Below are positions 19,706-28,099 of a stretch of DNA of 64,000 bases, in pieces. The stretch spans positions 186,001-250,000 of the forward strand of contig NW_020847002.1 in the NCBI RefSeq assembly GCF_003704095.1. Reading direction: 5' to 3'. Under the pieces are notes generated by a model. The model searched no databases. It worked only from the letters and a program-made list of their open reading frames with translations, and had not been told where the DNA came from. The position numbers and the translations under genes were made by a program. The stretch comes from Pocillopora damicornis. Its lineage: Eukaryota. Positions within the stretch are counted from its first letter, which is position 1, and every line of letters begins with the position of its first letter.

Positions 19706-22700
19706 ATGAAAGAAAGCTAAACGTTGGTGGCTGTCGCTTTATTACTGATTTCTGTTCGTTAGCTCAGAGTTTTGCAAAGAAACAAATATATGTTTTTTTG
19801 AGGCACGCAAGATACTCATAAATAAAAAAATAAATTCCTCTACAAGCTACCCTAAATTTCTTGCTGAACTGACTACAGCGATTGACGCTGTCGAGTTTTA
19901 GTAAAAGTACGGCTGTTAAGTTTCTGCGGAAACCTTTTATTACTTTCATCAGAATTCTACATAACAACTGCACTGCGTAACTAAGGCCTGGAAATATGTA
20001 AATGCAGAGTCATTTATTATTTTTCAAACATGCTGATTCTTCAAGAAATAGATTCAAATTTGTCACCCGCCGGGCCTTGAAAACAAAGGAGACGACAAAA
20101 ACCAATAGCCTACTTTCAATTTTTCATAGTACCTCTGGTCCTTGACAGGTTGTCAAAGTTATAAAGCGAACACTAGAGGCAAACAGTTTTATTAAACTCT
20201 TGAGTCCTCCATGCTCCAGTTTACTTTCCACCATCATGTTAAGTAAGATAACGTTGTTTTTCATTTTAGTGTCCCAGACAAAAACTTCTAATACTGTCGA
20301 CAAAGGAGCTCTCGAAGACTCGGGTAAGACGAGAATTTGATTTTTTTTTTCAATAACGGAAAAACATATGGTGTCAAATTTTTTACTTAGTTACGCATAT
20401 GAAAACCAACCCAAACACAACGATCTCGGATCATGATTTGTAGTTTTAGGACGAGTCAAAACAGAACGTGCTACTTCGCTTTTGTAATTGATCTTATTTC
20501 ATGATGCCTTGTGTTCAAAACCCGTTTTGACGCATTTCTCCTTACTTGTCTTCCAATCGTTTAGTGAATGGCTGAAAGCCTGTCATTTTCAAAAGTATAT
20601 CTAGTCATACTTATACCAAAAATCATTCTCGGGAACTCGGCTACTTTTGGTCGCCTTTCAAGAAGTCACGCTTAAGTTATTTATTGCGTGCATTACCAGT
20701 TTTCAGAAGCGGGTTTCATGTTAGTGTTCACGGTAGAGGAAGAAAATCAAACTAAACAGATTCTTCAGTCGAAGACTGTGCGTGAGTCCCACTCGATATC
20801 ATTCGAGTCATAGTGACCCGCAATGAGTTTTATGCGCAACAGGCAAGGGTCGAACTCGTGCTCCTCTAGAAAGGTTGAGAGTCTCTACGACTTAGCTGTG
20901 TAAGACTCGAGATACCTCGGCAATCAAACCTGCCGTCTCTATTTATTTCATTGCGCAAAACATAACTATTTATTCTCTTTTACAACGTTGCCAAGAACCC
21001 AACGAGCCGTCGCTATTCAATTGAAACATAGAACCTAACACAAAAAGCAAAACAAACGACCTAGGAAGTTACCAGAAAGTCACTATAACATGATAATTTC
21101 CATAAAACCGCACGATTTAATTTTTCAAAGATAGTAACAGTGAAAAACACCGACTTTGTCTCTGTCCGAAATTGTTTGCATTATCAACGGTTTGGAAATA
21201 ACAGCTGGTCAAAGAAAACTAAGAAATGATATTTTATTAGATTATTTCATGCTGGATGCATCTGTTCACTGTAAATAATATTCCTTTGGTACACGTCTAC
21301 CTTAACTGCGACCAACGCGACCTTTTGTCCCATCATTTCCACCCTCAGTTTGAAAGATACTTGTTTTGAATTTTCGTGACTGCTTCCTACTTCATGAAAC
21401 TTTCTCCAATGTCACCTGCAATCACGTAAAAAGAGCATGCAACGATAGCCGGCTCTTTGGATTTTGATAAATTCTGTTGTTACAATTCCAAGCAGAAGAA
21501 TCAATTACTAAGCATATTATCTCAACACAGAACGATGGCACGTTTATCCAAATTTGTAAAAAAATTAAAAAAGCAATACAATACTTTTAAGGCAAACATT
21601 GAAAATTTCAGGTTTTCGCACAGTTTACTTAGATTTTTTCCTTCAAGGTTTCCTTAGTGAATTTTTAGTGCCTTGGCAGAGATTCGATAAGAAAAAATTA
21701 CTTGAATAAACATCAGTTACCTGTTCTCTAGTATAACAAGCCGCCTTATATCATCTGTCGGCAAGTGGACAATTTCACTGAAACAGTTCTGCAAAATGTT
21801 TGTGGGTGTTCATTATCTTCTTCAAGAAGAACGTTTAACAGTATACCCCGAGAGAATTTGCCGCAATCCTCTCCAAGACCTGAGGTAATTTGACATAGCC
21901 TGCGAATGGAAATGTAACTTGAATCAGACCGCTTTTTCTTCTAATTGGGGAAAATTCAGTCCGTCAACTTTAACTTCATGAATGTTTCGGAAAGGACATC
22001 AGTTTCATTTTCATAATTTGCATTGACATCAAAATCAGAATAAATTTTTACTAAATTTTTAATTCGTGGGTAAGGCCACTTCGCCATTGTTATCTTAGTT
22101 GACTATCGACACATTGTTCCGTCAGTAGAACATAAAAATATTAATCCAGGTTCGAAAATGGTGAACTTTCAAATTGACCGATTCTGTAATTAGTAGACAA
22201 CTTTTTTGGATTAAAAAAAGGCAGGGGTTCTTGAGCTATTTACACAATTGTATCCGGTTAATTTTGATGAAATTCATGAGCTATTTTCACCATCTTAAAT
22301 TAGTTTTCAAATGGTAACTGCTGAGAAGTGAAGAGGCTTAGGTTTTTTTGAAGCTCTTCTGGCCAGAAATAGCCAGTGCACCTCATTAAGCCCATAATTT
22401 CTTTCGTTTTAACCCTAACTGTAACACGTCGTATATTCTCACAAATAATGCAAAGTGGTAGAATAGAGACATTGTCGCTTACTGTTCCTGTGTAATCTTA
22501 CAATTTTACAAGGCTGTCAAGCATTGTAAACAGTCAAAAGCAGTAGCTTAAACTTCCGCTGACAAACAGGAAATCTTTTCCGTTTACTTTAGAGCCACAA
22601 TTATTCCGAAGTGAAGGCTGCTACGGAGCAAAGTCAATACAAGATGCTGGTGTTAATCTTGGACGCTTTAGTTCTTCTGATATCGGTGAATGCGCTGAGC

Positions 22701-25700: not shown

Positions 25701-28099
25701 TCTAGACTCTCCAGTTTATACCCCAGAAGATAGCCAGTTATGGCAGATGGCTAAACATGTGCTCCAAGTTGCAGACTACGCTCAAACTCAAATCGTAGAG
25801 CATCTATTCAAGATTCATTTGTATATGGAGCCCATTTGTGTCTGCGTGCATCGGCGCCTGTCGAAATTGCACCCTCTTCACCAGCTATTAAAGCACCATT
25901 GTAGGGGGTTGCTTGGAACGAACGCGCTTGGACATCCATTTTTGATGGCACCGGGTAATGGTTCCATCGATAAGCTCATGTTAATTGGTCAACAAGGGGC
26001 TATGACAATGATGAGAAGAGCCTATAATGACCTTTCGTGGGAAAAAACAGACTTTTTAGCCAATATCAAGGTTGGTGCTGAATTATCTATCTGGTGCTTT
26101 AATAAGAATTTTGTTCCTTAAAACGTAATAGTAACAAAGAAACCAAATCGGTTGTAGTGGACAACTACAGAAAGTGTAAAAAGCACTTACGGCAAAAAAA
26201 AAACAAAAGAAAAAAAAGAGAATTAAAATATAGTGAAAGACGGGAGACATTTTCTAATAAAGGGAACTAGAAAGCAAATCTAACAAGACTGCACCAAACT
26301 CCTCTGAAAAAAGTTTTTATTTTTCAAAGAAACGAGGCCTAGGAGACATGGAGAAATTGCCTTACTTTCCCTACAGAGATGATGGACTTCTGATTTACCA
26401 TTCGCTGTCGAATATGGTCAAAGAATTCGTTGGGAAGTAAGTTTTTAAGGGTTATTTCATCCCTGGAAAAGGTAAAAGGTAGGAAAAAAGGCCCTTCTAT
26501 CTCTAAACGTCACCTCCAGAAGTTACTACGAAGGTTTAGTATGAGTTTCAAGTACAAAAGTCTGTGTCACTGCTAATGTTTAGGACTGAACATTCAAATG
26601 CAATTTTAAGGTCCTTGTACCGTGATGTTTTTGGCAATCAATAATTCGCTATTTTTTTTCATAACTGAACTTGATTTTCGAGGGTTAAAATTCTAACGAA
26701 AGGAAATTGCAGTTTTATTGGCAGTGTGATGGAAAAGCTATAATTGCATCTGAGATCTAACAAACGAAATACCAAGTGCCAGCACCATGCTATGGAAACT
26801 ATCAAATTGGGGATTTTCAACTATTAGTTTTGGGGTTTCTGTGTACAGAAACAATTTGCAATCGAAGTAGGTCAATCTGGATTATTTCCTAGTTTTATTC
26901 CATCGATCTCTAACATTCGTGGTGTGGTTGAAGGTATTACAGATCCAATAGAGAAGTTATGATCGACAAAGAGCTGCAAGATTTCGCACGTGATGTCTCA
27001 GTTGGATCTGGAAAGGTATTGTCACGTGACTGGAGAGGAGGAATGGCAAAAGGAAATAGAGGAGGAAATGAAAAAAATTGTCTGAAAGTTATTCAATGAA
27101 TTCACGATCTTTCTTCTCCGTTCTTGTCGTCAGTTCTAAAATTTCCATTGACAACAAATCCTTCAACAACATTTCCAAGGACCTCGAAGGGCGTCAAAGA
27201 TATTCTCGTGTGTCTTTTCATGTTTAGGTCTTCCCTTAATGTTTGGAACTACTGGAACTAGTACAAAACCTTTGTGAATGTATATCATATCTTCTCAAGA
27301 GTTAAAGGAAAAGATCATCGCTTGATTCACTTCAACTCGCATAATATACGCACGTATCATAAGTTAAACCATCGAATTAGGTGTATATATTTGTTTCATA
27401 CAGAGGTATTGTGACTCTTGGTTTTTCCTACAAATTATTGTATTCTGCTTTCTGTACAAATTTACCGCAGGTGAAGGGCTTTCCAACAAAAATTACTTCC
27501 AAGTTTTGTCTAGCAAGTCACTTAGTTCGCATTATGTGGATGACAAGTGCACAACATAGTGTGATCAATTATCCCGTGAATCATTACGGTGCTTTGACGT
27601 TTAACTCGCCGACAAAACTGTACAAAGATAAGATGACAACCATGGGTCATTACAGCTTCACTAACCTCCCTAGGAATGTCACTTGTATGGTGAGTGTTTC
27701 TTACATAAGTCGCCTACTTGTATACCAAAGACAACGCTGGACACTCGTGTCCTTACAGTGTGCTCCTTTCCGATTCATTCGCCCAGCTACTGAGCGCCTC
27801 TACTCAGGATTGAAGAGCGTTGCTGACTCTGTGATCATCATTTTTTAAATTTTTTTTGTCTACAGACTCAATCAGCCCTATCCATGACTCTGGCAGCAAT
27901 GCATTACGACCGTCTCTTAGACTTCGTACCAAAATTCCCGGAGGAAAAAGGAAAATCTGTCCTTCAGAAATACCACGACTACCTGGACGGTGAAGTCACG
28001 AGTAAAATAATCCAAAGGAATAAGCAGAGATTTAAGGAGGGTCACCTGCCTTATCCTTATCTCCTGCCAGCTTGGATAGCTAATAGCATTCATACTTAG
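19706..28099 (+). CDS. Lipoxygenase (animal-type, predicted R-specific) with N-terminal WSC-like domain and probable signal peptide; 5' end uncertain
   Basis: Exons 23614-23951, 24253-24409, 24526-24635, 25151-25340, 25706-26070, 26330-26436, 26934-27015, 27471-27689, 27866-28099. Motifs: WRDDDVFTDQRLAGMNP, WQMAK, EHLFKIH (Fe ligands), HPLHQLLKHH, YPYRDDG-like FPYRDDG, AQHSVIN, C-terminal NSIHT. Upstream phase-1 exons: 22593-22859 (Cys domain), 20270-20323 and putatively 19706-19757, which contains a TAA at codon 5. Confidence 0.85.

Follow-up and report, generated by a model that had tools for sequence, protein, structure and literature searches.

An expressed coral gene joins a WSC-like four-cysteine exon to lipoxygenase exons that lack PLAT

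Does the coral Pocillopora damicornis make a lipoxygenase (LOX) that carries an N-terminal module of an extracellular type where other animal LOXs carry PLAT? Animal LOXs are typically cytosolic and are brought to membranes by PLAT, a domain that binds Ca2+ and membranes. The question was raised by an earlier note on 64,000 nucleotides (nt) of the P. damicornis genome (NCBI RefSeq assembly GCF_003704095.1, contig NW_020847002.1, positions 186,001 to 250,000; the whole of this stretch is the window, and coordinates are those of the window unless a contig is named), which had read from the letters a putative secreted LOX with a WSC-like module in place of PLAT. We found one expressed gene of 11 exons at ~20.2-28.1 kb on the plus strand, which encodes a protein of ~718 amino acids. 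The length of ~724 amino acids given earlier was close, and the corrected model gives 718. We put the probability at about 70% that the product starts with a signal-peptide-like N-terminus and short linker, continues with a single divergent four-cysteine WSC domain, ends in a complete LOX catalytic domain without PLAT, and acts in the way proposed below.

To establish the architecture, we compared positions 18900-24899 with assembled RNA contigs from four runs belonging to four studies (X1, X5, X10, and X7). The GT..AG joints 20323>22593, 22859>23614, 23951>24253, and 24409>24526 were present in contigs of all four runs, which include the two junctions that the earlier note had singled out for checking, on either side of the cysteine exon. 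All four runs also showed loose ends after 24635/6, whose onward letters were those of 25152 onward. A single contig of 726 nt spanned 20204-20322, 22592-22856, and 23611-23952. The open reading frame was maintained through every RNA joint, and the joints showed no additional exon between exon 1, the cysteine exon, and the LOX exons. Because the joints were common to the four runs and the frame stayed open, the cysteine exon belongs to the LOX mRNA, and its in-frame splicing into the LOX exons is as had been proposed.

The 5' end of the gene differed from the earlier reading, in which a hydrophobic exon at 19706 came first. That segment reads MKES, a TAA stop, TLVAVALLLISVR, and a second stop; it showed no joint in any RNA run and had zero coverage in three polyA/oligo-dT-type runs, and we rejected it. 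The exon that had been taken for a linker is real and phase-compatible but is not a linker, being the first exon, with a start codon and a hydrophobic N-terminus of its own. Exon 1 (20204-20323, from RNA) comprises a short 5' untranslated region, an ATG at 20236, the signal-peptide-like N-terminus (29 codons with the linker), and a phase-1 donor. RNA contigs of the four runs extended 91-119 nt 5' of the donor at 20323, and the longest began at 20204, ~30 nt before the ATG. Since the 19706 exon fails and the ATG at 20236 lies in exon 1, the gene starts near 20190-20204. A candidate TATA box (TATAAAG, 20160-20166, plus strand) lies ~40 nt before the 5' end of the longest RNA contig and may belong to the promoter. 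The 5' untranslated region also holds an upstream open reading frame of 11 codons (20211-20246), which overlaps the start codon at 20236 and may modulate translation.

The in-frame ATG opens the hydrophobic N-terminus MLSKITLFFILVS... (also quoted as MLSKITLFFILVSQTK...), with a Lys near the start, a hydrophobic core, and then small residues. Its maximum Kyte-Doolittle value over nine residues was 2.77, and the homologous N-termini from two other assemblies (loci L017 and L019) reached 3.16 and 3.20, respectively. In L019 the first exon carries a Met and a hydrophobic stretch, its linker resembles that of the window gene, and its GT donor is likewise in phase 1. At L017 a hydrophobic start and a WSC module lie within one open frame, so the intron found between the two in L019 and in the gene of the window is missing. 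The L017 sequence comes from a related contig of a JGI metagenome, on which this frame occupies 1911-2300. The N-terminus is thus signal-peptide-like, and it may be cleaved and lead to secretion. Hints of a secretory route come from the hydrophobic N-terminus, which recurs with an identical phase-1 donor in three species, from a cysteine pair where the catalytic domain begins, and from a glycosylation sequon in exon 3.

Exon 2 (22593-22859) is the cysteine exon. It is 267 nt long, has AG/GT flanks and phase 1-1, and is joined on both sides in RNA; its translation, with four cysteines, was as quoted in the earlier note. The WSC family (PF01822) was the sole Pfam match of exon 2, at 19.3 bits and an E value of 0.0014. 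We then searched 1.84 billion representative proteins with the module using phmmer and obtained 59 matches at E<=1e-3. The matches included short open reading frame fragments, 42-56% identical, and long multi-repeat proteins. Two of them, P0004 (E 1.4e-16) and P0014 (9e-11), themselves match the Pfam WSC profile with E values of 1.7e-31 and 6e-31, respectively. A profile search of the PDB with the module returned only WSC chains, weakly (Kremen1 and yeast Wsc1).

The AlphaFold2 model of the module, built on an alignment of 15 sequences, had a predicted local distance difference test score (pLDDT) of 90.6 and a predicted template modelling score of 0.82. The top Foldseek match of this model was yeast Wsc1 (7pz2), with a template modelling score of 0.71-0.73 and an E value of 1.8e-4, followed by Kremen and Fusarium glyoxal oxidase. 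VIA-align gave Z 11.8 against Wsc1, with a root-mean-square deviation of 2.3 A over 86 residues, Z 9.3-9.6 against Kremen, and Z 9.0 against the WSC domain of glyoxal oxidase, with PAN/apple domains in a lower tier (Z <=6.3). The nearest clusters in the ESM Atlas, which we take as a lead only, were cnidarian WSC fragments at 0.86. Because Pfam, phmmer, the PDB profile search, and the fold comparison agree on WSC and PAN/apple scores lower, we assign the module, on its predicted structure, to the WSC fold as a divergent four-cysteine subtype. The WSC-like identity claimed for the exon was therefore upheld by the modelled fold.

Four-cysteine WSC-like modules were abundant in the genome, each copy in one uninterrupted open frame. 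This abundance, together with the symmetric 1-1 phase of exon 2, fits an origin of the exon by exon shuffling, which is plausible from these sequence features.

PLAT is absent from the gene product. No exon gave a Pfam match to PLAT (PF01477). In a six-frame search of the genome assembly (234.35 Mb in 4393 contigs), PF01477 had 121 matches, none of which was on C3637, the contig that carries the gene in the coordinates of that search. The same search found LOX loci with an adjoining PLAT elsewhere, on C4204, C2496, C3860, C2640, and C2558. Exon 3 had no Pfam match and might in principle hide a divergent PLAT, but its AlphaFold2 model was all-helical, with four helices and zero strands (pLDDT 74). 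A PDB profile search and Foldseek with the isolated exon 3 model yielded chance-level matches only; exon 3 supplies only a piece of a bigger helical domain, and from this model we used only the secondary structure. In exon 4 the W..D..F..NP motif corresponds to residue 99 in a cyanobacterial mini-LOX without PLAT and to residue 226 in ALOX12. The ~135 residues before the motif thus comprise the helices with which the catalytic domain begins and about 20-35 additional residues. Exons 2 and 3 gave no catalase-type (AOS) Pfam match, and with the short exon 1 at the RNA 5' ends there is no AOS domain at the N-terminus of the gene product. The statement that the LOX part has no PLAT thus held in the Pfam search, on the contig, among the RNA joints, and in the helical exon 3. 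Transcripts link the cysteine exon with the LOX exons, the modelled fold is that of WSC, and no PLAT exon was found, so the core of the earlier proposal stands.

The LOX domain runs from exon 3 to exon 11. Exon 3 (23614-23951; RNA joints and alignment) starts the catalytic domain and carries the cysteine pair and the sequons NQT and NLS. Exon 4 (24253-24409), with the W-x-x-D-x-x-F...NP motif, is supported by RNA joints and by a match to positions 186-213 of the Pfam LOX profile (PF00305). Exon 5 (24526-24635) follows from the joint 24409>24526, and its loose ends run into exon 6 (25151-25340), whose start is given by the loose-end letters of the four runs, whose orthologous exons are 66-73% identical, and whose donor is predicted. 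The splice sites of exon 7 (25706-26070) were placed from AG/GT and frame. Exon 8 (26330-26436) matches Pfam LOX positions 460-481 and has its boundaries kept in the orthologous loci L024 and L025. Exon 9 (26934-27015) has an acceptor context and YY residues kept in three species, with 26943 as a possible alternative acceptor. Exon 10 (27471-27689) matches Pfam LOX positions 520-578 at 23.1 bits; a phmmer search of it against the PDB gave nothing at E<=0.01. Exon 11 (27866-28099) continues the open frame to the C-terminus ...NSIHT and a TAG stop. The sequons NQT, NLS, NGS, and NVT listed in the earlier note were all present, with NSS in addition.

Exon 7 carried the strongest family signal. 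Pfam Lipoxygenase matched it at 25708-26073 with 72.1 bits (cut-off 23.6), the six-frame genome search recovered it at C3637:211720-212034 with 68.5 bits, and the other LOX exons matched the profile more weakly. It aligned with coral 11R-LOX (3vf1) at E 1e-17 and with the 8R-LOX domain of AOS-LOX at 5e-12. The iron ligands were found as H-L-F-K-I-H in exon 7, opposite H-L-L-R-C-H of 11R-LOX, and as H-S-V-I-N in exon 10; both the His-x4-His and the His-x3-Asn motif are kept in orthologs and paralogs. The Coffa-Brash position, also in exon 7, is Gly and is aligned with the Gly of coral 11R-LOX, and on this residue R stereochemistry is predicted. The ligand motifs and the Gly suggest that the domain is catalytically active. 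The cysteine pair, at residues 3 and 15 of exon 3, was invariant in the alignment of orthologs and paralogs, and together with the C-terminal Thr it distinguishes the clade.

Beyond its transcription, the gene shows conservation and purifying selection. A WSC exon followed by LOX exons on the same strand and in the same order was found in four other assemblies (L018/L024, L019, L021/L022, and L023/L025), reached through the fragments matched by phmmer; L019 is a contig in NCBI GCA_044670265.1, and in L024 and L025 the series is complete as far as the stop codon. The run labels read coral metagenome. Identity to the window was 46-73% for LOX exons and 39-47% for the WSC exon. The four cysteines of the WSC exon were invariant in seven sequences, and the ratio of nonsynonymous to synonymous substitution rates was 0.19-0.41, counting unsaturated pairs only. 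The N-x-T sequon of exon 3 was kept in four of five orthologs. The search for the same architecture that had been suggested was therefore answered at the level of exon order in these assemblies; among the representative proteins phmmer retrieved only open reading frame fragments and multi-WSC proteins and no full-length annotated WSC-LOX protein.

Three paralogous LOX genes (loci L011-L016) lie at ~671.8-675.3 kb of C788, ~52.5-58.6 kb of C3046, and ~161.9-168.7 kb of C3883. They are 35-56% identical, have the same exon structure, and keep both the cysteine pair and a C-terminal Thr. The six-frame genome search gave no PLAT match on their contigs. Upstream of the three paralogs we found no WSC exon, no convincing EGF-like cysteine pattern, and no convincing Met with a hydrophobic start; one of these regions contains an assembly gap.

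Taken together, the parts of the protein suggest how it might work. The signal-like peptide would take it into the secretory pathway, where disulfides would form in the WSC module and in the cysteine pair of exon 3. The enzyme would then be released, or retained in a lumenal compartment, and the WSC module may tether it there to a polysaccharide or glycoprotein matrix, replacing the localising role of PLAT, while the iron centre would oxygenate polyunsaturated fatty acids, probably with R stereochemistry. A wider reading, which we hold tentatively and at slightly less than even odds, is that stony corals have a whole clade of PLAT-less LOXs that are extracellular and probably of R type. Its marks would be the N-terminal cysteine pair and the C-terminal Thr, and its members would have received different N-terminal targeting modules by exon shuffling, here WSC, and would make oxylipins outside the cell.

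If that were true, oxylipins would arise in the mucus or the calcifying matrix, or at the surface of microbes or symbionts, in a mode of animal oxylipin formation undescribed so far. Provided that the enzyme is secreted and active, extracellular oxylipins of the coral could serve in wound response, antimicrobial defence, recognition of symbionts or pathogens, and the lipid chemistry of the calcifying matrix, from which a recent proteome preprint already reports lipoxygenases. The locus would also be a clean case of exon shuffling retargeting an enzyme, with PLAT swapped for a signal-like peptide and WSC. The gene is a directly testable construct.

Several points weigh against the reading of the product as a WSC-targeted extracellular LOX. 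The WSC match of exon 2 fell under the curated Pfam cut-off (19.3 vs 27.8 bits), so that the Pfam check proposed earlier separated WSC from PLAT but left WSC itself below threshold. The module keeps four of the eight canonical WSC cysteines. Glycan binding is a property of the WSC family, and for the four-cysteine subtype it is a prediction drawn from the family. The hydrophobic core of the N-terminus is short, at ~8-9 residues, and the proposed start at 20236 is preceded by an out-of-frame ATG at 20211. The C-terminal residue is Thr and not the textbook Ile, and for this reason enzyme activity is not assured. All searches and folds took the spliced model one exon at a time, and the RNA check covers exons 1-6, with exons 7-11 drawn from the genomic sequence.

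These points bear on four other explanations. The architecture could be as described with a WSC module that does not bind glycans and serves instead in protein-protein contacts, in oligomerisation, or as a folding or pro-domain of a secreted LOX. The fold is common to PAN/apple protein-binding modules (Z about 6), the WSC domain of Kremen was solved (5fws) within a protein-binding receptor that modulates Wnt, which is a further point against glycan targeting, and the lost cysteines and the low Pfam score fit such a change of role. The nearest structures, however, are Wsc1 and the WSC domain of a fungal secreted oxidase and not PAN, and in fungi the WSC modules of secreted oxidases bind polysaccharides of the cell wall, which counts against this explanation; we consider it somewhat unlikely. 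That the WSC exon might be part of a separate upstream gene, with the joins produced by read-through or as assembly chimeras, is scarcely credible. The RNA evidence does consist of assembled contigs and not of raw reads, but identical GT..AG joints occur in four studies with similar depth on both sides and an open frame, the exon order is the same in four other assemblies, and neither a stop nor a polyA-type end falls between the exons.

The LOX domain could also be a pseudo-enzyme or have an altered chemistry, owing to the Thr at the C-terminal ligand residue. In textbook LOXs the fifth iron ligand is the main-chain carboxylate of the C-terminal Ile. The Thr ending is common to the gene (28085-28099), to its orthologs L024 (13984-14214) and L025 (13912-14142), and to the three paralogs, and the clade ends in ...NS-x-x-Thr. 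The ligand is nevertheless a main-chain carboxylate, and because the N-S-x-x-end register is kept, as in mini-LOX 5med, the carboxylate of the Thr may still serve as iron ligand. With all His/His/His/Asn ligands kept across orthologs and catalytic exons 57-73% identical between species, we regard the loss of normal activity as quite improbable. We likewise think it unlikely that the N-terminus sends the protein into an internal lumen, such as that of a secretory granule, cnidocyst, or symbiosome, or is an uncleaved anchor, so that the enzyme acts inside an organelle. The short hydrophobic stretch and the reported presence of WSC-domain proteins in sea-anemone venom (PMC6627431) would agree with such a placement, but a core of 8-9 residues is short for a membrane span, and eight lipoxygenases are reported from the proteome of a coral skeletal matrix, which is extracellular (bioRxiv 10.64898/2026.03.24.713908).

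Other genes were seen in the window on both sides of the LOX gene. Upstream, at 12524-13956 on the plus strand, open reading frames with repeated D-D-Y-(S/D)-x-P-W-(D/E) motifs and no Pfam match are part of another gene. Just past the LOX stop, at ~28.4-29.3 kb on the minus strand, open reading frame fragments appear by eye to be of the betaine-homocysteine methyltransferase type, and two short fragments that were tried gave no Pfam match. An exon-sized open reading frame at 39397-39921 (plus strand) encodes a GCV_T aminomethyltransferase folate-binding domain (E 3.4e-16) and is part of an adjoining multi-exon gene. At 55151-56737 on the minus strand lies an intronless open reading frame of 528 amino acids for a lariat debranching enzyme, with Pfam matches to the DBR1 C-terminal domain (E 8.6e-31) and Metallophos (8.8e-13).

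Among known systems, the solved structures that best match the catalytic core are those of the coral R-LOXs, namely 11R-LOX of Gersemia fruticosa (3vf1) and the 8R-LOX domain of the AOS-LOX of Plexaura homomalla (3fg1, 4qwt, and 3dy5). The His-x4-His motif and the Coffa-Brash Gly are common to them and to the LOX described here. Coral 11R-LOX and AOS-LOX have an N-terminal PLAT, preceded in the fusion by a catalase-like AOS domain, are cytosolic, and end in Ile. In contrast, the gene in the window has a signal-like peptide and a WSC module, no PLAT, an extra cysteine pair, and a Thr end. LoxA of Pseudomonas aeruginosa (4g32 and 5ir4) and the mini-LOX of Cyanothece (5med) are PLAT-less too, and 5med has a similar N-terminal helical length and the same C-terminal register. 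Fungal Mn-LOX is likewise PLAT-less and is secreted. These microbial LOXs are bacterial or fungal, only some are secreted, and none carries WSC, whereas the core of the present enzyme is nearer to coral LOX. In the literature that we searched there was no description of a WSC-LOX, of a PLAT-less or secreted animal LOX, or of a C-terminal Thr in a LOX, and the layout of the gene points to an extracellular animal lipoxygenase of a kind not yet described.

For the WSC module, the closest relatives of known structure are yeast Wsc1 (7pz2) and human Kremen1 (5fws), with which it has the fold in common (Z 11.8 and 9.5, respectively) and with which it aligns at its G-C-Y start and its G-G-x-C core. 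Their WSC domains have eight cysteines and sit on a membrane sensor and a receptor, while the coral module has four cysteines, sits on an enzyme, and is 18-25% identical. The nearest parallel in domain order is found in fungi, where the joining of WSC to a secreted oxidase also arose. Fusarium graminearum glyoxal oxidase (9n3u) and the copper radical oxidases of Colletotrichum (6ryw and 6stx) have an N-terminal WSC/PAN module on an extracellular oxidase, but differ from the coral protein in their copper-radical catalytic domain and their eight-cysteine WSC, which in 9n3u matched our model at Z 9.0.

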